A stretch of 64,000 bases of DNA. It comes from Rebecca billardiae RCC1528 (lineage: Eukaryota; Protista; Haptophyta). Positions 27,740 through 39,712 of the stretch are shown in pieces. Position numbers and translations under genes: made by a program. The notes below the pieces were generated by a model. That model was given only the letters and a program-made list of their open reading frames with translations, was not told the DNA's origin and did not search any database. The first letter of the stretch is position 1. Each line of letters begins with the position of its first letter. The stretch covers positions 310,001 through 374,000 of the forward strand of contig OZ251248.1 in assembly GCA_965240325.2 (NCBI GenBank), given 5' to 3'.

Positions 27740-30700
27740 TCAGCTCGCGTCCGCCTTGACCGGCTTGCGGAAGGTGACCTCATACAGTCTCTCGACCGGC
27801 TTGGCGTCCGTGTCGCCGAGCGCCATGACGTCGTCGTACTGCGGGCGGGCGCGGGGGTGCGCGGGGCGTGCACGCGTGCGTGTGAGCCACGCGTGCGCGC
27901 GAGCGTCGCGGCACGGGGCAGGAGCGGACGGCGGTGCGGCGCGGTGCGCGCGCGCCCGGCCTTGGGAAGCCCCGGCGTGCAGCCCGCGCGTGCGCACACA
28001 CCTTCGACTTGAGTTTCTTCGTGGCGAAGAGAGCAAACTCCTTGGCGTCGTCGGACCAGCGGTCGATGAGCGGCGCGAGCGTGCCCGTCGCGTCCTCGCG
28101 CCAGTCGAAGTAGCCCTCTGCGCCCGGGCGGACGGGTGGGCGCGCGCGCACAGGCATCAGCGCGTGTTGATGATGAGCTCATCGCGCGCGCGCGCGCGGG
28201 CAGCGGGCGGGGCACGGCGCGTGGGGCGAGCGCGGCGCGCGCGCGCGCGCGCACCGGCGTATGTGTAGATGACTTCCCATAGCTCGGGCATCTCGTCGGC
28301 GAGCACGGCGCCGCGATTGCGCTGCAGCTGGGCCGCCTTCTCGAGCTGCTCCTTGAACGCCTTGAGCGCCTCCTTCTCCTCCTTCACCCACGCGCGCATC
28401 GCGACCACGTCGCGCAGCATCTGCTCGCGCTGGTCGATGCCCGCGCGCATCACCTTGATGCGCGCCGCCTCGACGTCCGTGCGGAACTTGGTCGGGCGCG
28501 GCAGGTGCGAGCCGGGCCTGCCGCCGCGCGAGAGCAGGATCGCCAGCACCACCTTCCCCTCGTCCGTCCCGTCGCGCAGCGCGTCGTCGTACGCCGTATT
28601 CCCGAACGCATCCTCCAGATGAATCTCGATGTCCGGCAGCCCGACCAGGAAGTTGAGGCCGTTCACGTTGCGCGACGACGCGGCGAGGTGGAGGGGCGCG
28701 CGGCCGAGCTCGTCCTGCTGGTTGACGGAGCAGGCGAACGTGATGATCCGCTTGAGGTTCTCCACGTCCGGCTGCGTCGCCGCCTCGTTCACGTACCGCG
28801 CGATGTCGAACTCGCCGAGCTTGGCGCCGTGCTTGACGAGCAGCGCACACGCCTCGTCCTGGTGGCCGAGTAGCGCGTCCTGCAGCGCGGTCGCGCCGCG
28901 GAGGTCGCGGTTGTTCACGTCGGAGTTGTTCTCGATGAGCAGCAGCAGGTTCTCCGTACGCCCCTCCGCCGCCGCCACGTGCGTCGCCGAGCGCAGCTCG
29001 AGCGTGCCCGCGTTCACGTTGCCGCCGAACGAGCAGAATCGCTGCAGCACCGCCGTGCCGCCCGGCACGGCGCCGGCCGCGCACATCTCCTCGGACACGT
29101 TGCGCGTGCCGTGCAGCCCGCCGTGGCTCGCGAGCAGCGCAGCGGTCTCAAAGTTGTCCGACTGCAGCGCGTCGTCGAGCGCGGTGTGCCCGATCTTGTC
29201 CTCCGCGTTCACGTCCGCGCGCGCGGCGAGCAGCAGCTCGATGAGCTTCTTGTGCCCGCCGCACGCGGCGAGCTGCAGCGGGCGGCGGCCGTGCGAGTCA
29301 GCGTGGTCGACGTCCATCGAGCGCGCCGAGAGCAGCCGGCGCACCTTCTCGAACTCGCCCTTGACGCACGCCACGCAGATCTTCGCGTGCATCATCTCAT
29401 CGCGCTTCGCCTTGGCGTTGGCGAGCGTCTGTGGTGCGGCGCCGCGCGCGCGCGCGCGCCACGCGCGTGCGGAGCGCCGGGCGGAGCGCGGCTCAGCGCC
29501 GTGCACGCGGGAGGCGCGGGATGGGGCGCGATCGCGCTGGCGGCCGGCGCACCTGCTGCAGCGAGATGATGTCGGAGGCGCCACCCGAGCTGCCAGTCTC
29601 CGAGCGGCCATCCTGCGAGCTCGAGTCGTTGCTGCTGCCGAGCGCCGAGCTGCCGCCTCCCGAGCCCGAGCTGTGGCTGCTGCGTGCGCCGGAGGAGGCC
29701 GAGGCCTTGGAGCGGCCAGAGCGCGCCGAGCCCATGGCTGCGCACACGCGCACGCGCGCACGGCGCCGCGAGAGGGGGGATGGCGCGCGCGAGCAGTCAG
29801 CCATCGCGTCGGCCACGCGCGCGCTGCGAGGTCGAGCCGCGCGGCCCGCGCGCGCATGCGCGCGCGCACGCTCGCGCGCGCGCGCGCCGCGCGTACTCAG
29901 GCCCTCGTACTGGCGGACGGCATTGTCCATGAGCACATCCTCCTGCGTCGGGAACGACTTGAGCAGCTCGCGGTACAGCTCCTGGTTGAGCACGAACGTG
30001 GTCGCCTTGTCGTTGCGGCTCACCTTGGCCGTCTTGTGGTGCCGGATGCCAAAGATGAACGCGACCTCGCCGAGGAACTCGCCCGGGCCGGCCGTCTGGG
30101 TCTTGTCGTCGCTCTGCTCGTTCTCGTCGCCGTCGCTGAACTCGACCGTGCCCGAGGCGAGCAGGATCAGCTCCTTGCACTGGTCGCCCGCGCGGTAGAT
30201 CACCATCTCGGCCTCGATCTCGCGCTCGGTGAGCACGGCCGAGAGCCGGTCGATGAAGCCCTCGTCGCAGCCCTTGAGCAGCGTGGTGTCGGCCATGAGC
30301 GCGCGGTTGGTGTTCGACGAGATCTCCATCTGCAGCGGCACGGGCAGCCCCGAGTAGATCTGCTCCGAGTCGATGTTGGAGAAGGAGGCGTGCTGCATCT
30401 TGTCGACAAAGAACTTGGTCATCCGCTCCTTCAGATCGGCCGGCACGTTCACGTGGCGCACGTACGCGTTGACGAGCTCGAGGTGCGCGCGCTTGCCCAC
30501 GATCTCGTCGTCCATCTTCATCACGATCCCCGAGATCCCGCCGACGCAGTACGCGTCTGCGGCGCGCGGGTGGCGCGCGGGCGCCGGGCGTGCGTGCGGA
30601 GTCAGTGCTCGGAGCGCGCGCGCGCGGCGAGCGCGAGGCGGTCGGCTCGCGGCGCACGCGGCACGCACAGATCGTCATGTTGATCACGCAGAAGCTCACG

Positions 30701-33700
30701 AACATCGCGAACTCGACGTACGTGGCGGGCAGCTGCACGACGCCGAGCGCCGAGACGAGAGAGAGCACGAAGAAGACCGCGGTGATGTAGTGGTCCACGA
30801 GCTGCTCCTCGGGCGACATGTGCGTGAGCAGCCCGTCCTCGCCGCCCACCATCACGCGCTGGCGCAGGTAGTACGTGGCCCACGTGTTGTCCCACTTGTT
30901 CAGCGCCATCTGCGAGAAGCCGATCACGTTCCACACGCCCGCGCAGTAGTGGATGATCAGGATGAGCGGCAGAGCGTTCTTGAGCAGCATCCGGCCCATC
31001 TGGCGCTCGGAGAGGTTCGACCGCCAGACCTTGAACGCGCCGAGCAGGTAGCGCGCGTTGATCATGCGCAGGTGGCGCACGCCGAAGCGGATCATCGGGT
31101 CGATGCCGAGCACCCACAGCACCTGGTCGTGCGGCCAGCACGCGAACGCGTCGAGGCCAAAGTCGTTGGAGAGGTAGTGCGCGCGCACCTCGGACGGCGC
31201 GAACACCTCGACCGACTTGTCGTTGATGAACGTCGTGTTGAAGCGCAGCAGGATGCGCAGCATGTACAGCGCGTCGCACACGAGGTTGACGTACGGCACC
31301 CAGCGCATCAGCACCACCTGCTCGAAGAAGCACAGCTGCATCGGCACGGTGAGCACGTCCCACAGCACGGTGATGTAGAAGAGCCACACGCTCAGCTTGT
31401 TCATCCGAGAGTGGACCGAGACGATGTACCACGGCCACACCGTCGTCGTGCTCGCGCCGTTCTCGACGCCCGCCTCTGCGGAGACCATCTCGCGCGAGCC
31501 CACCTGGATGTCGAACTTGTCGAGGAGCGCGACGATGCCCTTCTTCTTGCCGCCGCTCGCCGCGCCGGTGAGCGGATCGACGCCGCCGGCCGCGCGCAGC
31601 GCCGCCACGCGGTCGCGCAGCTTAGTCACGAGCTTCTCCCAGGTGACCTTCCGCTGCTCGAGCTCCTCGGCCTCGAGCTCGGCCGCGCTGAGCAGCAGGT
31701 TGTGCACGAGCGCGTGGTTGGGGTCGTCCTCCTCCTCGCCGTCGTGATGCTTCGCGACGGCGCCGTCCGCGGCGGCCGCGCCCTCCTCGGCGGCGCGCGC
31801 GTCGGCGACCGGCCTCCCGCGCACCGGGATCGTCAGCTCGAGCTCGCGCTCAACCCAGCCTCGGATGTGCTCGGCCGTCGTCTCCATCGGGATGGCGAGC
31901 GCGTGCTGCACGGCCTTGAGCAGCACGTTCGCGTCGACCTCCTCCGCCGGCTCGATGCGGCCGGTCTCGATGCGCAGCGTGAGGTTGTCCGCGAGCAGCA
32001 TGCACGCCGTCGCCGTGCCAAGCGCCGCGTTCAGCTCGGCGACGATCGACTCATCCGCGGCGGCGATGCGCGCTGCCTCCGCCTTCGCCACCTTCGACTT
32101 GGCCTGCGCCGCCTTGGACATCACCTTGCCCGCCGCGAGCACGTCGCCCTTGCGCAGCTTCGGGATGAAGACGCCGTTGCCGTCGGCGCCCGCCCCAGCC
32201 GCCGCGTCCTCCGAGACCGCCAGCAGAATCCACGAGGACACGCCGATGAAGAACTGAGACTCGGACATGGACTGCGCCGGCCGGTTGCTCCGCCCCTTGG
32301 AGCGCAGCTGCAGCACCTGGTCGTTGCCTGCGTGGACCATGCGCCCGCCCACGGCGCTTGGCGCCACGGTGCTCGACGGAGCCTCGGCGGGGGGCGCCTT
32401 CTCGGCCTCGCCAGCGGTGGAAGCGACGACCGCCGTGCTCACGCCCGCCGCCGAGCTCGCCGCCTCGGCCGCTCCGCCCGCCGCCTCCGCGGGCGCCGAC
32501 TCTTCCGCGCCCACCTCGGCAAAGTTGGCCTGCGGTGGCGCCGGCGCCACGTTGACGCGCAAGGGGTCAGCGGCGGCGTCGGTGGTGCCATCGCCGGTGG
32601 CCGCGGCTGCGGCCGCGTCGGTGGCGTCGGCGGCAGCGTTGTTCTCCGCCGCCTCCGCGGCGTTGCGGTCGTCGGAGGACCTGCGGTCGGCGGAGCCGTC
32701 GTCCGCGTCCGCGGCGACGGCCGCAAAGAGCTTCTCGAGCTCCTCGTCGACCGCGTTGCCCTCGGCCTTCAGCCCGACTTGGAGCGTGGTGCGGCGCGAG
32801 CCGGCGCCGCTCGCTCCGCCGTCCTCGAGCACGCGCGAGGTGCTGCGCCGACGGCCCGCCGCCGTGCCCACCGGCTCGGCGTCGGCGGCGAGCTGGCCGT
32901 CCTCGGCCACGGCCGCGACCTCCTCCGGCGGTGCGGTCAGGTTGCGCGACGCGGCCATCAGGTAGGTGAGCAGCGACTTGATCTCCTCCGAGCCGAACTC
33001 GCCGAGCTCGCTCTGCAGCCTGCGCACGTCGCGCATGCGGATCTGCCCGGTGTGCGACGCGTCGAAGACGCGGAACAGCCGCGTGATCAAGAAGCACGCC
33101 TCCTCGATGGCGACGATGCAGGACTCCACGCCGTCCGCGCCTGGGTCGGACTCGCGCGGCGAGCCCGAGCCGTCGCCGCCCGCCGCAGCGTCGCCCGTGG
33201 ACTGGCGCTCCTCGGCGTTGAAGCTGGTGCGCAGCCGCGCGGCCATGCCGCTGAACCGCCCCTTGCGCTTGGGCGAGCCGTAGACGTCGTCGTCCTCGGC
33301 GGCGAGGTCCTTGTCCTTGGATGCGCGCGCCGCGCGCGCGCCAGCAGGCTCGGATGGGTCGGCGGAAGCGCCGAGCGCGGCGGCCTCGCCCTTCGCCTTC
33401 GCCTTCTTCCGCCGCCGCGTGCCGTAGCGCTGTGCGAGCAAGTCGATGAAGCGGCGCGAGCAGAAGAGCACCACGTGCCCGAGCTCCGAGAGGAACAGCG
33501 GCCCGTCGCTCTCCTCGTCCGCCAGCTGCGCGCCCCGCTGCGCGCCGGCGCGCTCAGCGTTCGCCTTGGCGTCGTTGAGCTGGCGCGACATCTCGATCAG
33601 CCCGGCGCCCGTCTTCGAGCCGCGGCGCAGCGTCTCTTTGAACGAGCCGTTGGACTTGCAGAAGGAGCCGTCCTTGCCCTTCGAGTCGTGGCGCTGCACC

Positions 33701-36700
33701 GCCGCCGTCACCGCCTTCGCGTCGGCGCTCGAGCTCCGCCGGCCGTGGAGCGAGCTGTTGTTGCCGCCGGCCGCGTACTGCCGCGCCATCGCCTCCAGCT
33801 CGTCCGCAGCCTCGCTCTCAGCACTCGCCGCCGCCGCCGCGCGGACCGGCTTGGCCGTCCCCAGCTTGCCCGCCTCCGCGGGCGAGATCGGCGCCGCGTC
33901 GCCGAGGATCGACTTGAGCTCGTCGTACACGTCGCGCAGCACCTCGATCGACCGATCCGCGTCGAGATCGAACACGTGCTGCAGCATGAGCAGCAGCTCC
34001 TTGTCCTCCGCCTTGCGCCGCTCCTTCTCCTCGAGCTGCGAGAAGCGCTCGGACGAGAGCACGGCGGCGAAGCGGTCGCGGATGTCGATGAGGCCGGCCT
34101 CGGCGGAGGGCAGCTGCAGCACGAGCTTGATGAACTGCTTGGACGCCGCGCGCGAGTCCTGCTGCTCGAACGACCCGTCCTGCCCGAGCGCGGCGCCGCC
34201 CGCGGCGCGCGCGCCGCGGCCGTCGTCGTCGCTGTCCGAGTCGTCGTCCTTGCCCTTGCCGTCGTCCGAGTCCGGGTCGGAGTCGGTGTCCGAGTCGAGC
34301 TCCTCGCCGTACTCGTTGATCCAGAAGTCGGACCACTTGCCCACCGTGCGGAAGGTGGTGCGCTGGTGCCGGTGCAGCTTGCTCAGGTCGCTGGCGAGCT
34401 CCATGATCGACATCTCGACCTCGCGCGACTTGTCGACCAGCTCGGTCGCGTGGTGGTCGTGCAGGTGCGCGAGTTTCGTCACCGCGCGCGTGACCTCGTA
34501 GAGGTTGAGGGTCTTCGCCTTGTCCATCTTGCGCTGGATCTGCTCGTCCATCGCGAACTGCGCCGGCACCGTCGCGCCCGCCGAGATCAGGATGCTCGCG
34601 ATCTTGAGGTCGACGTTGAACGCGTCCATCAGCGGCGGCCGCGACCAACGGTCCTCGCAGTTCACGTCCGCCATCGCCTTCACCAGCAGGTACACGCTCG
34701 AGATCGAGCCGGACATGACGGCGAAGTGGAGCGGGGTGCGCCCGTCGTAGTCGGGCAGGTTGACCTTCGCGCCCACCGTGAAGAGGAAGCGCAGCCGCTC
34801 GACGTCGCCCCGCGTCGCCGCCTGCCGCACCATGTTGGCGATGTGCTCGCCCTCGGCGCGCGCCGACGCCTTGACAAGCATCTGCGCGACGAGCTGGTGG
34901 TTGAGCAGGATGGCGTCGTCGAGGGCGGAGCGGCCGTGGCGGTCGCGCGTGTGCACGTCGCACATGTTCGAGATGAGGTACTCCGTCACGCGCAGGTTGC
35001 CCTCCGTCGCGGCGACGTGCAGCGCGGTGCGCCCGTCGTAGTTCCTCGAGTCGAGCGGCACGCCGTGCGCGACCAGCATCGTCATCAGCGGCATGTCGCC
35101 ATGCTTGGCCGCAGAGTGCGTCCACACGTGCGGCAGGTCGAGGACGAGCTGCGCGCCGGCCTTGACGAGCTCGTCCGCCACGGCGGAGTGCTTGCCCTTC
35201 ATCGCGTTCTCGAACGGCGACGCGCCGAACCGGTCCTTCACCGCCGTGTCCGCGCCGAGATCGCACAGCAGCTTGACGACGGTGCTGTGGCCCTCGACGC
35301 AAGCGAGATGGAGTGGGGTGCGCTTGTCGTGCGAGACGGCCTGGATGTTGAAGCCGCGCGCGATGAGCTGGCGCACGGTCTCGACGTCGCCGTGGCGCAC
35401 CGCGATGGCCATCTGCGAGAAGAGCTCCTCGTTCCGGTCGAGGATCGCCGTGCGGATCAACGTGCGCAGTGCCTCGTACTCGCGCTTCTCGTCCTCGTCC
35501 ATCTGCTCGGCAAAGCCGACGTTCGCGAGGTCGGCGCCCTCCTTGTCCAGGCCGTACTTGCGCAGCACGTTCTGCAGGATGAGGTCGGTCTGCTCGGGGT
35601 AAGAGGCGATGACGTCGAGGAAGGTGGTGGCGGTGAGCACGCTCAGCGTCACCTCGCCCTTGGACGACGCGAGCGCCGTGTACGGGTGCGGCAGGCCGAT
35701 GAAGAAGGCGACCTCGCCCACCACCTGGCCCGGGCCCAGCTCGGAGCGGACGGTGGAGACGAGCGTGTCGCCGCGCCACATGTGCATCGTGCCGCCGACG
35801 CACCAGAGGAGCTCGGCCGCGCCGTCGCCGCGCTTGAAGGCCACCTGGCTTGGCTGTGGATGACGGTATCGGCGGCGGCGGCGGAGTCGGGCGGATGCGG
35901 TGGGGCGCCGGTGGCGGCAGCGGAGGGCACGGCAGCGCCGACAGATAAGAAGGCGACATGCGCCAAGTCTCTCTCGCGCGCCCGCGCCGCGCGCGCTGCC
36001 CAGCGCGCCCGCGCGGCAGGCGCGGCGCCGCGCGCCGCGTACGCCGACGAGAGCGCGCACCATCATGTACCGCTCGCGCAGGTACAGCGTGACGTACGTG
36101 AGGAACTGGTGGTTGCACGACCAGAAGACCCACGTCTGCTCCATCTGCCGCATGTGCTGCGAGGACGCGACCTCGACGCGCAGCGAGAGCGGCATCTGGC
36201 TGTTGATCAGGTCGGAGCCCGCGGCGAGCTTGCGGTGCTGGAACTGGTAGTGCCCGCGGATGCGCAGGGCGAGCTCCTTGGGCAGCTTGCGCTCGGCGAC
36301 GTAGTCGTCCACCGCCTTCATCAGCTCGTTGTAGTGCACGGTGCTCTGGTCGGTGCGCACGAGGTACTGGAAGAGCGTGCCGAGCACGAACGCGTAGAAG
36401 ACCATCTGGATCGCGGCGACGAGCGCGGCGAAGAGCACCTCGGCCTTCTCCGTGAGGATGATCGTGCCGTAGCCCATCGACGTGAGGCCCATCCACGCCA
36501 TGTACAGGCTCATCAGGTACTGCTGGTACAGGCTGGCGACCGCCGGGTCGAGGTCGGCGTTCTCGGTCAGCAGCGGGATCTGCGCCGGCCAGTTGGGCAG
36601 CTCGAGCGGCTGGTTGGACCAGCGGCCGCCGAGCGCCCACCAGCAGCAGGCGACCTGCCGTGCGGCGGCGCACGCATAGGGAGGGGGCACGCGGCGGCGC

Positions 36701-37717
36701 AGCACGCAGGGCGAGCATGGAGCGTGAGCGAGCGCGCACCGGGCGCAGCTCCCTCGCTATATCGCGCGCGGGCGCGCTCGTGCGCATGGATGGTGACGCG
36801 TGAGCGCGCACCCAGTGCGGCACGGAGAGGATGACGATGGAGAACTTGTACGCGGCGAGGAACTTGACGTTGACGGTGAGGTCAGTGTTGATCTCCTGCA
36901 CGTACATGACCAGCTCGCGCACGCGCACCGCGCGCACGATCTGCACGAGCGACCACATCCAGTCGTTGCCTGTCAGGATGTAGATGGCGCGTGCGATGTG
37001 CAGCGCAAGGCTCGTGCCAATGTCGCGCACGGCGTGTTTGGTGAGGTAGAGGCCGGCGACGGCGGAGCCGTCGTCGGTCGTTGCGCTCGCACGCGCCTCC
37101 GCGATCAGCTTGCGCCGCTCCTCGCCCGTCGGCTGCTCCATGATCGTCTTGGCGATCCAGCACAGCTCGAAGAGGTCACCAATCGCGTCGATCACGATCG
37201 CGACGCCGCTGTACGCGAGCTCGTGGGGAAAGGCCAGGCGAAGTGGGATCATGAGCTCCTCAAGCGTGAAGATGGGGATGCGCGCGAGTCGCGCAATTGC
37301 CTTGAACCGCTCGCGCTTCTCGCGCTCGTCCGTCTCGATCTGCTGCCGCGCGCGCTCGTCGTCGAGCGTCGCCTCCTCGCCGGCAAGCACCATCCGCCAC
37401 TTGACCGTGCGGTCGCCCGCCCTGCGGCGGCCGTGGTCGTTGCCGGTCTTGAGGATGCCCTTGACCGCCTTCGTGTCCCGCGCCCGGCCCTTCTTCAGAG
37501 CGCCCTCCTCCTCGTCCTCCTCCTCGTCCTCCTGGTTGCGCATGAGCGCGACGTCGAGCAGCTTGCGCGCGCGCGCGCCCAGGCCATGCGCTGCTGCGGC
37601 GACGCGGCCGCGGCCCATCTGGCGAGGGGACTCCTCTTGACTGTCGGCGCTCCTCGCCGTCTCGTCGACGTCCGCTCCGCCCCCCGTCGGCAGGGGTGTC
37701 ACCTTGATCTCGCCCAT
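27740..37717 (-). CDS. Giant two-module cyclic-nucleotide-binding-domain cation/K+ channel with ankyrin repeats and EF-hand-like linker, ~2972 aa; exons 37717-36812, 36654-36061, 35853-30669, 30556-29897, 29737-29553, 29428-28255, 28117-28002, 27838-27740
   Basis: Module I has S4 (IVRAVRVRE), pore LTSMGYGT, C-linker/CNBD (GPGQVVGEVAF) and ankyrins (DKRTPLHLA, YDGRTALHVA). Module II has a second 6TM, CNBD (GPGEFLGEVAF) and ankyrins (HGRRPLQLA, LGRAPLHLA). Seven GT-AG introns give consistent phases, with 8919 coding nt in total. Confidence 0.85.
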
Positions 37718-39712
37718 CGAACACGCTCTCGCGTCGCTTGGCGTCGGGTTGTCGGGTTGGCTTTCGCCAAGGTGCTGACGCACGAGAGCGCTGTGGGCTG
37801 CGCAGCGAGTGGACAAGCCGTTCGTGAACATATTGGCTGAATGAAAAAGTGGGCGATCGAAGCGATTAACAAATTTGATATTCGTCAAACCCTCCCCATA
37901 GTCGTTAATAAAGTTGGCCACGCTCATTGGTCATCCATGAGTGATATTTACGGTCATCAATCAATATAAATCAGATGAGCGAGGAATCGATGACCGGGAA
38001 AGCAACAGTTCACCGTGGGGCCCGTAGCGCCCCCCATGTTTTTTCTTCGATTTCAGACCACCACCAAGCGCACCACGAAACGCCGTTCAGGATCCGAATT
38101 CAACGTCACACAACAAATCGTGCATCAAATAAGCCATTCAGCAGCCCGAACCGCAATTTTCACGTAGTATCAAAGACGTGACAATGATTCCGTTGACTAA
38201 TCATGAATTTCAGATGGTTTTATTTCACGTATCAAACAGCACAATCCGGATCCTTCGGCTCATCAGATGAATCGATGATTATCAGGGTAAAACTGATCTG
38301 GGGATTCTGGGCATGCATCATCATTCCATCATCATTCTGGCGATTGTGATGGCTGACTCTAGCCGTCCAGGCGTCCACGCACGACGTCCTTCTCGGGCTC
38401 GCAAGCCAAACGCGACCGCGATCGGCCCAGGCGGTATTCGCGATCGGCTGGCGGACTATTGTGAAGCTGCACACCTATGGCCTACCTCACCCCGCACTGG
38501 ACCCCCCTTGTCAGATTGAGGAACGAACCGCGCGCGCGCTGATGAGTGCGAGCAGCGCAAGGCCACCTGCTCAAATTGGTCAGGCAGGGAAGTTGCCCTC
38601 CGTCACGAATGATCGCCGCATGCGCTGCGCTGTAGTGTAAACACCTTGGCAGCTGCACCACCTTGCAGCTCCACGCTCGCGCGAGTCGTGGGCACGTCGC
38701 AGGGGCCATGGTTCTCAAGTCTCAACAGAGTTTCGGGGTCCCATGCACTAGTACGAAGGGTCCCCATAGAGAAAACCACTGGCCACTTGACGACAGTGCA
38801 CACGCGCCGCGGCCATCGCCCCCAGATTCCCAGAAGGAGCGTTCAACGCCAGTGAGCAGCAGCCGCGCGCCCTGCACTGCGATCGTGGCCCGGGCGACTA
38901 CTCGGCTCTCCGCGGAGGCGCGGATAGGGCTGAAAGCCAGACTCGGTCAGCCGGTGACAATCTCTATGTCTCTGCCACCCGGCGCGAATAGCTGAGATTC
39001 GCCGCATGCCAGCTCTGCTGTCTCCAGCCGGCACTCAGCGCACGCGCTCGCGCAATCCATCCGCATGTGAGCGACCGCTGCGCCATCGTCAGCTCGGGCT
39101 GCGCTCGCTCTGCAGTAGTGTACAGTAATCGCAGGTGACCCGGCCGCACCAACAAGTAGTCCAGGCCCTGAGCCGGCCGCAGCGCCTTGAGCATATATTG
39201 GTGATGCTATCGTAAGTTACGCGGTCGGCGGTGCGATCACTGAGAGGCTGAGTGACTCGTGCTGTCCGTACGTGACAACTCAGACAAGCCCCGAGGGCCG
39301 TGAGCCCGCGCTGCGTCAGCCACGCGGGCCGCGGCCGAGCACGTGAGCAGCGGGCGCGGCGGCGGCCGGCGCCGTCGAGCCGGCGCGGCGCGGCCGCGCG
39401 GGCCGTATCACATTCAGACAGTAGACACGGTTTATGAGCCTTGACCGACGGTCGTACATCACAGCAGCACGCAGACTCTATCAGCATCAGTAGTACGTAA
39501 GCATTCCGGACCGGCGGCCGCGTTATTGGCAAGCAGAGTCGGCGCACAGTCATGATGATGAATAAGAGCAGCACGGAGTAGTCGGGCACCGGCCCGCGGC
39601 ACCGTAGTTGTCCGTTGGCACCGCCGCGTAGTAGTTATATAATTCGGCGTATAGTTGCGCTACTATAAGTTGCCGCACCGGCGTCACGCGTCGTGATCGC
39701 CAGTATATAGTA

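Follow-up and report, generated by a model that had tools for sequence, protein, structure and literature searches.

Channels of the cyclic nucleotide-binding domain (CNBD) superfamily combine six transmembrane segments (6TM) and a pore with a short link between S4 and S5, a C-linker and a CNBD fold. The plant Shaker-like members AKT1, SKOR and GORK consist of a single module of this kind, with a T-x-G-Y-G pore and a CNBD-homology domain followed by ankyrin repeats, and assemble as tetramers. Concatenated forms have also been described: CNGK of sea urchin and zebrafish joins four CNBD repeats through short spacers, without ankyrins, into a pseudo-tetramer, and two-repeat tandem CNBD channels were first reported, from sequence, in dinoflagellates and oomycetes by Pozdnyakov et al. 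in 2020 (PMC7576140). The repeats of those tandems are less than 30% identical, are separated by short spacers, have filters of 'TVGYG or close variants' in both repeats and fall into separate, co-evolving clades of first and second repeats; ankyrins are not mentioned, and tandems were not found in other groups, with none reported in haptophytes. Here we describe a gene from the haptophyte Rebecca billardiae RCC1528, located on the minus strand of a 64,000-nt window (the whole stretch of DNA analysed, from contig OZ251248.1; ~70% G+C, with long open reading frames (ORFs) on both strands), that encodes a chain with the order [6TM-pore-CNBD-ankyrin]-linker-[6TM-pore-CNBD-ankyrin] and unequal pores. 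We consider it likely, from sequence and by analogy with described channels, that this one gene specifies a doubled, ankyrin-bearing CNBD channel, for which the assembly and filter proposed below are conditional. Because two-repeat tandems had been published in 2020, the preliminary description of this locus, which passed from one-module plant channels directly to four-repeat CNGK, was incomplete in its background; the literature searched contained no other report of tandem CNBD channels and none of an ankyrin-bearing doubled form.

Like the published tandems, this chain holds two 6TM-CNBD repeats, is known from sequence only and belongs to a family in which diverged repeats form separate, parallel clades. 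Unlike them, it has an ankyrin domain in each module and a spacer of ~1000 residues with conserved islands, and its second pore reads SALGVVQ, so that a TVGYG-type filter is not present in both repeats; the tandem of Saprolegnia (P0129, 1314 aa) gave no Ank match. Plant Shaker-like channels resemble both modules in the succession of CNBD-homology domain and ankyrins and are closest to module I, which shares their GYG pore and C-linker, but they are single tetramerising modules, whereas here two unlike modules are fused, the voltage sensor of module I is atypical and no KHA-type C-terminal domain was detected (in the relative P0072). Concatenation of CNBD repeats is shared with CNGK, although this chain has two repeats rather than four and the four-repeat proteins found here fall in a different clade. 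Two-pore channels (TPC1-3) also have two unlike 6TM repeats per chain, a dimeric pseudo-tetramer and two types of filter strand, but they belong to a different voltage-gated branch without C-linker, CNBD or ankyrins; all matches obtained here are to the CNBD family, and the resemblance to TPCs is best read as an architectural analogy only. AKT1 is reported to form a 2:2 heterotetramer with silent AtKC1 (10.1101/2024.12.27.630498), and the GORK tetramer to undergo a reduction from C4 to C2 symmetry (10.1101/2024.12.17.628833). The combination of a conducting and a non-standard type in a fixed 2:2 pore, as with AtKC1 or the silent KvS subunits, is the logic of the dimer proposed below; those subunits come from separate genes with a stoichiometry set by assembly, whereas here the fusion would hard-wire it.

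The gene extends from 37717 to 27740 and comprises eight stop-free exons with GT..AG borders:

37717-36812, minus strand: exon 1, with the start ATG at 37717, a charged N-terminus of ~140 residues and then S1-S5 of module I
36654-36061, minus strand: exon 2, with the end of S5, pore helix, filter I, S6, C-linker I and the start of CNBD I
35853-30669, minus strand: exon 3 (5185 nt), with the remainder of CNBD I, ankyrin domain I, the entire linker and module II from S1 to the start of S6
30556-29897, minus strand: exon 4, with the remainder of S6, C-linker II and CNBD II
29737-29553, minus strand: exon 5, a Ser/Gly-rich spacer placed by splice sites and frame
29428-28255, minus strand: exon 6, with ankyrin domain II (~28619-29386) and a helical tail
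28117-28002, minus strand: exon 7, a conserved C-terminal segment, 42% identical to P0001
27838-27740, minus strand: exon 8, the conserved C-terminus ...ERLYEVTFRKPVKADAS, with the TGA stop at 27742-27740

These exons total 8919 nt, or 2972 codons, in agreement with the single two-module chain of ~2972 aa in the preliminary description; the 5.2-kb stop-free exon that it had assigned to the first ankyrin domain, the linker and the second membrane part corresponds to exon 3. The start and the N-terminus in exon 1 are collinear with the N-termini of three relatives, P0072, P0001 and P0002, and exon 8 shares 79% of its residues with the C-terminal end of P0001 and 53% with that of P0072. All junctions coincide with positions at which intronless relatives read through uninterrupted; the intron at 36060-35854, for example, falls between residues 432 and 433 of P0002. 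A low-complexity stretch similar to exon 5 is also present in relatives. In a Pfam scan of the window, the channel domains were confined to minus-strand frames: Ion_trans_2, cNMP_binding, ankyrin and, far downstream, Ion_trans all lay in one open frame of 2302 codons, and a second cNMP_binding domain (exon 4) and a second ankyrin block (exon 6) lay in two further frames. Because the exon sum is an intact 2972 codons and the junctions are matched by intronless relatives, we conclude that one gene encodes the whole chain.

Two of the introns, 35854-36060 (207 nt) and 29738-29896 (159 nt) on the minus strand, are in frame and free of stops, and their retention would add 69 and 53 residues, respectively; the only signs that they are introns are a loss of periodicity in G+C at third codon positions (GC3) and the lack of a counterpart in intronless relatives. 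GTGCGC opens four of the seven donor sites, and three of these start with GTGCGCGC.

Exon 3 has G+C contents of 0.69, 0.458 and 0.964 at the first, second and third codon positions, and its GC3 never falls below 0.85 in any 40-codon window, whereas the seven introns have ~0.8 G+C in all three phases and no codon periodicity. As the GC3 bias is unbroken while the introns are aperiodic, exon 3 codes throughout; the chance of 1728 codons staying open at its composition is ~2e-15. G+C remains at 0.65-0.77 across the linker, without a dip inside the gene, and no coding-like periodic DNA was found within ~3 kb on either side of it. Just upstream of the start codon, at 37750-38400, G+C falls to 0.49-0.57 from ~0.70, and this stretch is likely to be a promoter or an intergenic spacer. 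A 2153-codon ORF on the plus strand (30373-36834), antisense to exon 3 and without domain content, is what a GC3 close to 100% on the coding strand would be expected to produce and warns against reading anything into ORF length alone in this GC-rich genome.

The same two-module layout, [Ion_trans-cNMP-Ank] twice, was recovered by Pfam in relatives; their database entries are unnamed, 'hypothetical' or labelled by domain. Collinearity with Diacronema lutheri KAG8469193.1 (P0001) extends over the whole gene, and exon 3 gave a single tblastn alignment to this protein of 1775 residues at 41% identity, from CNBD I through the membrane part of module II. P0002 is an intronless ORF of 2899 codons on three independent metagenome contigs of ~10 kb, which are genomic, because their ends are simple repeats, and P0072 (2704 aa) fills a transcript-shaped contig of 8.4 kb with short ends resembling untranslated regions. 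Both modules lie in one frame in two MMETSP transcripts (P0076 and P0224), and further members are a Trinity transcript from a dinoflagellate transcriptome (P0098, Gymnodinium smaydae), three proteins from the Rhodelphis marinus transcriptome (P0085, P0090 and P0093), a second Diacronema gene (P0094) and a protein of the prasinophyte green alga Cymbomonas (P0099). Across the haptophytes, Rhodelphis, the prasinophyte and the dinoflagellate transcriptome, the layout is conserved together with the linker blocks and the inequality of the pores. Missing from the public model of P0001 are, in module I, the last part of S5 with the turret and, in module II, the whole ankyrin block; all of these are present in the window and in P0072, so that the model probably has mis-called introns.

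Whole-module folding and comparison were carried out on the uninterrupted relative P0072, and the exons of the window were compared one by one. The Pfam and structure matches and the AlphaFold2 (AF2) model of P0072 agree with the defining features of the CNBD superfamily. Profiles of modules I and II are homologous all the way from S1 through the CNBD (hhalign probability 100, E 3e-56, 455 columns), and the two halves of P0072 are 24% identical over 730 residues including the ankyrins.

Module I follows the plant-Shaker-like order of S1-S6 with the pore, C-linker, CNBD and ankyrins, with the following elements:

36483-36466, minus strand: filter I, TSMGYG (context GLTSMGYGTI), aligned to TVGYGD of SKOR
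35853-35599, minus strand: beta-roll of CNBD I, matched by Pfam cNMP_binding, with the cassette GEVAFFIGLPHPYTALA
35433-34567, minus strand: ankyrin domain I (Pfam Ank_2, E 4e-38), 52-59% identical to relatives

The best solved-structure matches of exon 2, which holds the pore, were SKOR and GORK (E 2.5e-13). This exon is 61% identical to P0072 and 66% to P0001, and CNBD I is 62% and 66% identical to them, respectively. The alignment with SKOR upholds the earlier assignment of TSMGYG as a K+-type filter, and module I, not module II, has the T-x-G-Y-G pore of plant Shaker channels; the corresponding filters of relatives read SMGYGT, SMGYAT and SNGYAD. In the CNBD I cassette, Tyr occupies the position of the Arg that binds cyclic nucleoside monophosphates (cNMPs), within a 'QPYTV' segment common to P0072, P0001, P0002 and Mesostigma P0017. 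An aromatic residue likewise replaces the Arg in this domain of plant Shaker channels, which are not known to bind cNMPs. Because Tyr replaces the binding Arg, the cNMP dependence raised in the preliminary description appears doubtful as far as module I is concerned. S4 of module I contains three Arg. Its S1 (IPIFTLEELMIPLRLAF, exon 1, window 36812-37300) includes two Glu and is barely hydrophobic; this weakly hydrophobic, putative membrane span is nonetheless conserved in P0072, P0001 and P0002.

Module II begins within exon 3 and is equally complete:

31440-30670, minus strand: S1-S5, pore helix, filter II and the start of S6, recognised by Pfam Ion_trans and matching hERG, EAG, HCN1 and GORK
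30756-30733, minus strand: filter II, VSALGVVQ, then LP, aligned to SVGFGN of hERG

Its S1-S6 region is 43% identical to P0072 and 46% to P0001, and exon 4, with C-linker II and CNBD II, is 55% and 61% identical to them, respectively, the S6 and C-linker being among the best-conserved stretches. Pore II keeps the Ser/Thr, the hydrophobic residue and the first Gly of the filter, and the alignment to hERG shows that the Tyr-Gly is gone, as the preliminary description had read from VSALGVVQ; relatives have TALGIAQVP, SALGVAQLP and TRTGQTQLP. A hidden exon restoring GYG, which had been raised as an alternative, was ruled out, since exon 3 runs without a break from the pore helix through the filter into S6, and it is also contradicted by the same motif in intronless relatives. 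S6 runs on into exon 4 (…NMTI|YAYCVGGISG…) as it does in Diacronema (…NTTIYAWCVGGISG…). CNBD II (beta-roll ~30224-29958, minus strand; Pfam cNMP_binding, E 1e-08; cassette GEVAFIFGIRHHKTAKV) had bacterial SthK as its best solved match (E 1.8e-10) and reads GE...K-T-A, with Lys aligned to the Arg of SthK; relatives have Thr or Asn at this position. Ankyrin domain II matched Pfam Ank_2 with E 1.2e-26, and exon 6 is 48% identical to P0072 over 388 residues. The C-terminal tail is conserved within the doubled family, and Pfam (E up to 1) found neither KHA nor any other domain in the C-terminal 145 residues of P0072.

The AF2 model of module II, built on P0072:1696-2205 with 46 aligned sequences, had a mean confidence (pLDDT) of 89.8 and a pTM of 0.73, and it shows S1-S6, a pore helix that stops exactly at the Thr of the filter, the C-linker and the beta-roll, with a gap of ~5 residues between S4 and S5, which is of the non-swapped type. 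Foldseek matched this model over ~480-510 columns (E ~1e-21) to CNGA2/A4/B1, HCN1, Eag1 and the plant channels GORK, AKT1 and SKOR. Conservation and the predicted fold together indicate that module II is a complete, constrained CNBD-channel subunit and is not decaying.

An exhaustive profile search with module II returned 1059 cluster representatives at E <= 1e-30. The best 150 of these 1059 included doubled chains 2000-3000 aa long, in which a spacer of 800-1400 residues separates the repeats, CNGK-like proteins with four repeats, and two-repeat tandems with short spacers and GYG/GFG in both pores. A score of 200 bits or more with the module II profile was reached by 54 modules, which we counted as having module-II-type pores; G[YF]G was absent from 53 of them, and the consensus was [TS]-x-[LIMV]-G-x-x-[GQ]-[LF]-P (Gly in 44/54, Pro in 49/54). 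Pore II had been called 'degenerate' in the preliminary description; the family-wide count shows that it is not a one-off and that the scaffold [TS]-x-h-G....P (h, hydrophobic) is kept. Pore I is more variable: of 14 complete doubled proteins, four have G[YF]G there, seven have GY-x and three another sequence, so that the canonical pore I of the window is the less common state, with GYA in close relatives. Because nearly all module-II-type pores are without G[YF]G and yet share a conserved consensus, the comparison indicates that unequal pores are an old, selected feature of the family and not decay.

A tree of 65 rows (IQ-TREE quick search, SH-aLRT supports, unrooted) placed all module II halves in one clade (99) and all module I halves, including Mesostigma P0017, in another (99), with parallel internal branching in the two; the halves from the window group with P0072 and P0001 (supports 97 and 99). 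This mirrored branching suggests that the family goes back to a single early duplication or fusion. A separate clade (100), which excludes both halves of the doubled family, held the four-repeat proteins together with the short tandems, Saprolegnia diclina P0129 among them, so that common descent with the published tandems is not seen in this tree. The tandem state therefore probably arose independently of the oomycete and dinoflagellate tandems, a placement that is provisional on an unrooted quick tree.

Other concatenated CNBD proteins with altered pores were encountered. In a four-repeat group (P0097, P0105, P0106, P0110, P0125, P0131, P0133, P0149, P0167 and P0198), repeats 1, 2 and 4 have GYG/GFG and repeat 3 has a conserved 'PTLVVVVIGD'; here, too, one pore strand is non-canonical and fixed across the family. 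The multi-repeat proteins P0169 (3275 aa), P0193, P0197, P0216 and P0222, with up to eight profile matches, no GYG repeat and filters like 'GLFEGELP' and 'ALGRTIEP', seem to form one more family of concatenated CNBD-type proteins, in which the pores are altered throughout.

The two modules are joined by a long linker:

34566-31441, minus strand: linker of 1042 residues, with conserved helical islands between disordered acidic or Ala-rich stretches
33144-32938, minus strand: EF-hand-like helix-loop-helix within the linker, with the loop D-A-S-H-T-G-Q-I-R-M-R-D

Blocks with residues invariant in 5-14 relatives were FIKLVLQLPSAEAGL, FLSELGHVVLFCS, LFRVFDASHTGQIRMRDVRRLQSELGEFGSEEIKSL (the EF-hand-like block), SQFFIGVSSW, LLADNLxLRI and TWxxL. 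The AF2 model of the linker had a mean pLDDT of 60.9, and its helical islands coincide with the conserved blocks: confident helices were predicted at linker residues 1-80, 140-235, 360-400, 480-540, 765-790, 830-920 and 970-995, whereas pLDDT was below 50 outside the islands, about half of the linker being predicted to be disordered. The modelled EF-hand-like segment is a helix, a 12-residue loop with a short strand and a second helix, and D1 and G6 of the loop are invariant in 14 relatives. Plant TPC1 carries EF-hands in its inter-repeat linker. A Ca2+ input through the motif found here is possible. A FliL match in the Pfam scan of the linker was dismissed as meaningless; VIA-align matches concerned the first long helix only, were generic coiled coils (Z ~6-7) and included nothing function-specific. 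A word-based protein search with the linker alone found 2 relatives only, as low-complexity words crowded the candidates. Taken with the predicted structure, the conserved blocks indicate that the linker is under constraint and is not a random tether.

By analogy with TPCs or with a 2:2 heterotetramer, two chains would dimerise and place four pore domains, in the order I-II-I-II, around one pore. The preliminary description had offered such a dimer with an asymmetric 2+2 filter as one of two readings, and we judge it to be the most reasonable assembly. All four strands would supply the lower filter, [TS]-x-h-G, and the Tyr-Gly of the upper half would come from the two module I strands only. 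Because just two of the four strands would supply Tyr-Gly, a two-fold-symmetric filter with weakened K+ selectivity, permitting cation permeation of the NaK, HCN or CNG kind, is expected instead of a classical K+ pore. Gating would lie mainly with the voltage sensor of module II and with a mixed ring of C-linkers, CNBDs and ankyrins, and the linker islands would be regulatory. There is a hint of complementary specialisation, in that module I retains the GYG filter and module II the canonical voltage sensor. We tentatively suggest, as a possibility that should not be put higher, that the protein is a convergent CNBD counterpart of the TPCs: an obligate dimer in which two GYG-type and two [TS]-x-h-G-x-x-Q-L-P strands form a hybrid filter of non-classical selectivity (for example, Na+/Ca2+-permeable or weakly K+-selective), with module I as filter, module II as sensor and the linker adding Ca2+ control through its EF-hand-like motif or control as a scaffold.

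Several points weigh against the reading of the gene as a doubled channel of this kind. Everything said here of oligomeric state, conduction, selectivity and ligand dependence is deduced from sequence and by analogy, and filter sequence is not a reliable guide to selectivity, a caveat also given in PMC7576140. Pfam Ion_trans gave no match to the voltage sensor of module I, which is highly divergent. In the linker, the only EF-hand hit in Pfam was a sub-threshold match to EF-hand_6 (E 0.096), and the ligand positions of the loop (D, S, T and D here) are not kept in relatives. A long disordered linker might also be cleaved post-translationally. Finally, no RNA sequencing runs are listed for Rebecca billardiae, and the single transcript predicted for the gene follows from codon bias and relatives.

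The last point would leave room for two adjacent, tandem-duplicated channel genes with separate transcripts, seemingly fused by stop-free GC-rich DNA, and the antisense ORF shows that long spurious frames do arise in such DNA. However, a GC3 of 0.96 continues across the linker while the truly non-coding introns lose this bias, the linker is 27-37% identical to relatives and contains invariant residues, and the gene has no internal G+C dip comparable to its true upstream spacer. In relatives, moreover, both modules lie in one ORF or in one assembled transcript, so that the two transcripts that the preliminary description had named as its possible refutation have not emerged; two genes are strongly disfavoured. 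Least probable of all is that module II is a decaying, functionless duplicate, for which the loss of GYG would speak when taken on its own. Its identity to relatives resembles that of module I, its non-GYG consensus is conserved, its predicted fold is complete and of high confidence, and it is the voltage sensor of module II, not that of module I, that Pfam Ion_trans recognises; because of this conservation pattern, we regard decay as refuted.

Two further explanations accept an intact doubled gene and differ in what becomes of its product. A polyprotein-like precursor might be cleaved in the disordered linker, which would be accessible to proteases, to yield two types of subunit and heterotetramers of free stoichiometry, and the assembly of AKT1 and AtKC1 from separate chains offers a parallel. 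However, the conserved, confidently folded islands along the whole linker suggest that it works as a tether or as a scaffold for regulation, the fused state has been retained from a time before the split between haptophytes, Rhodelphis and green algae, and no cleavage motif was identified, which makes this course quite improbable. Alternatively, the central pore may not conduct, the protein serving as a voltage or ligand sensor or as a scaffold, or passing ions through a voltage-sensor domain. A pore II without the upper GYG filter is compatible with this, as are relatives in which both pores are strongly altered (for example, P0004, with YEDL and TSQSSPG), and HCNL1 is reported as a precedent within the CNBD family for a non-conducting pore, with ions taking the voltage-sensor route (PMC7306766). 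Against this stand the filter scaffold of Thr/Ser, hydrophobic residue, Gly and Pro that is kept family-wide, the strong conservation of S6 and C-linker in module II and the fully canonical GYG of pore I in the window, and we consider a silent pore unlikely. A dimeric channel with a 2+2 filter remains our preferred reading.

Pseudo-tetramers of unlike repeats, such as TPCs, K2P channels and Nav/Cav channels, are central to ideas on how selectivity and gating diversify, and to our knowledge no member of the doubled ankyrin-CNBD family has been studied functionally. What is new here is the family-wide rule of a non-GYG second pore, a clade apart from the oomycete tandems and a linker with folded islands; the family also adds, provisionally, an independent origin of tandem CNBD channels to the 2020 reports. 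A plant-Shaker-like unit appears to have been doubled once, long ago, and one rule has been kept since, namely that the second pore is non-GYG while its lower-filter scaffold is retained. The family would thus represent a natural experiment on a 2+2 hybrid filter and on the complementary specialisation of fused subunits.

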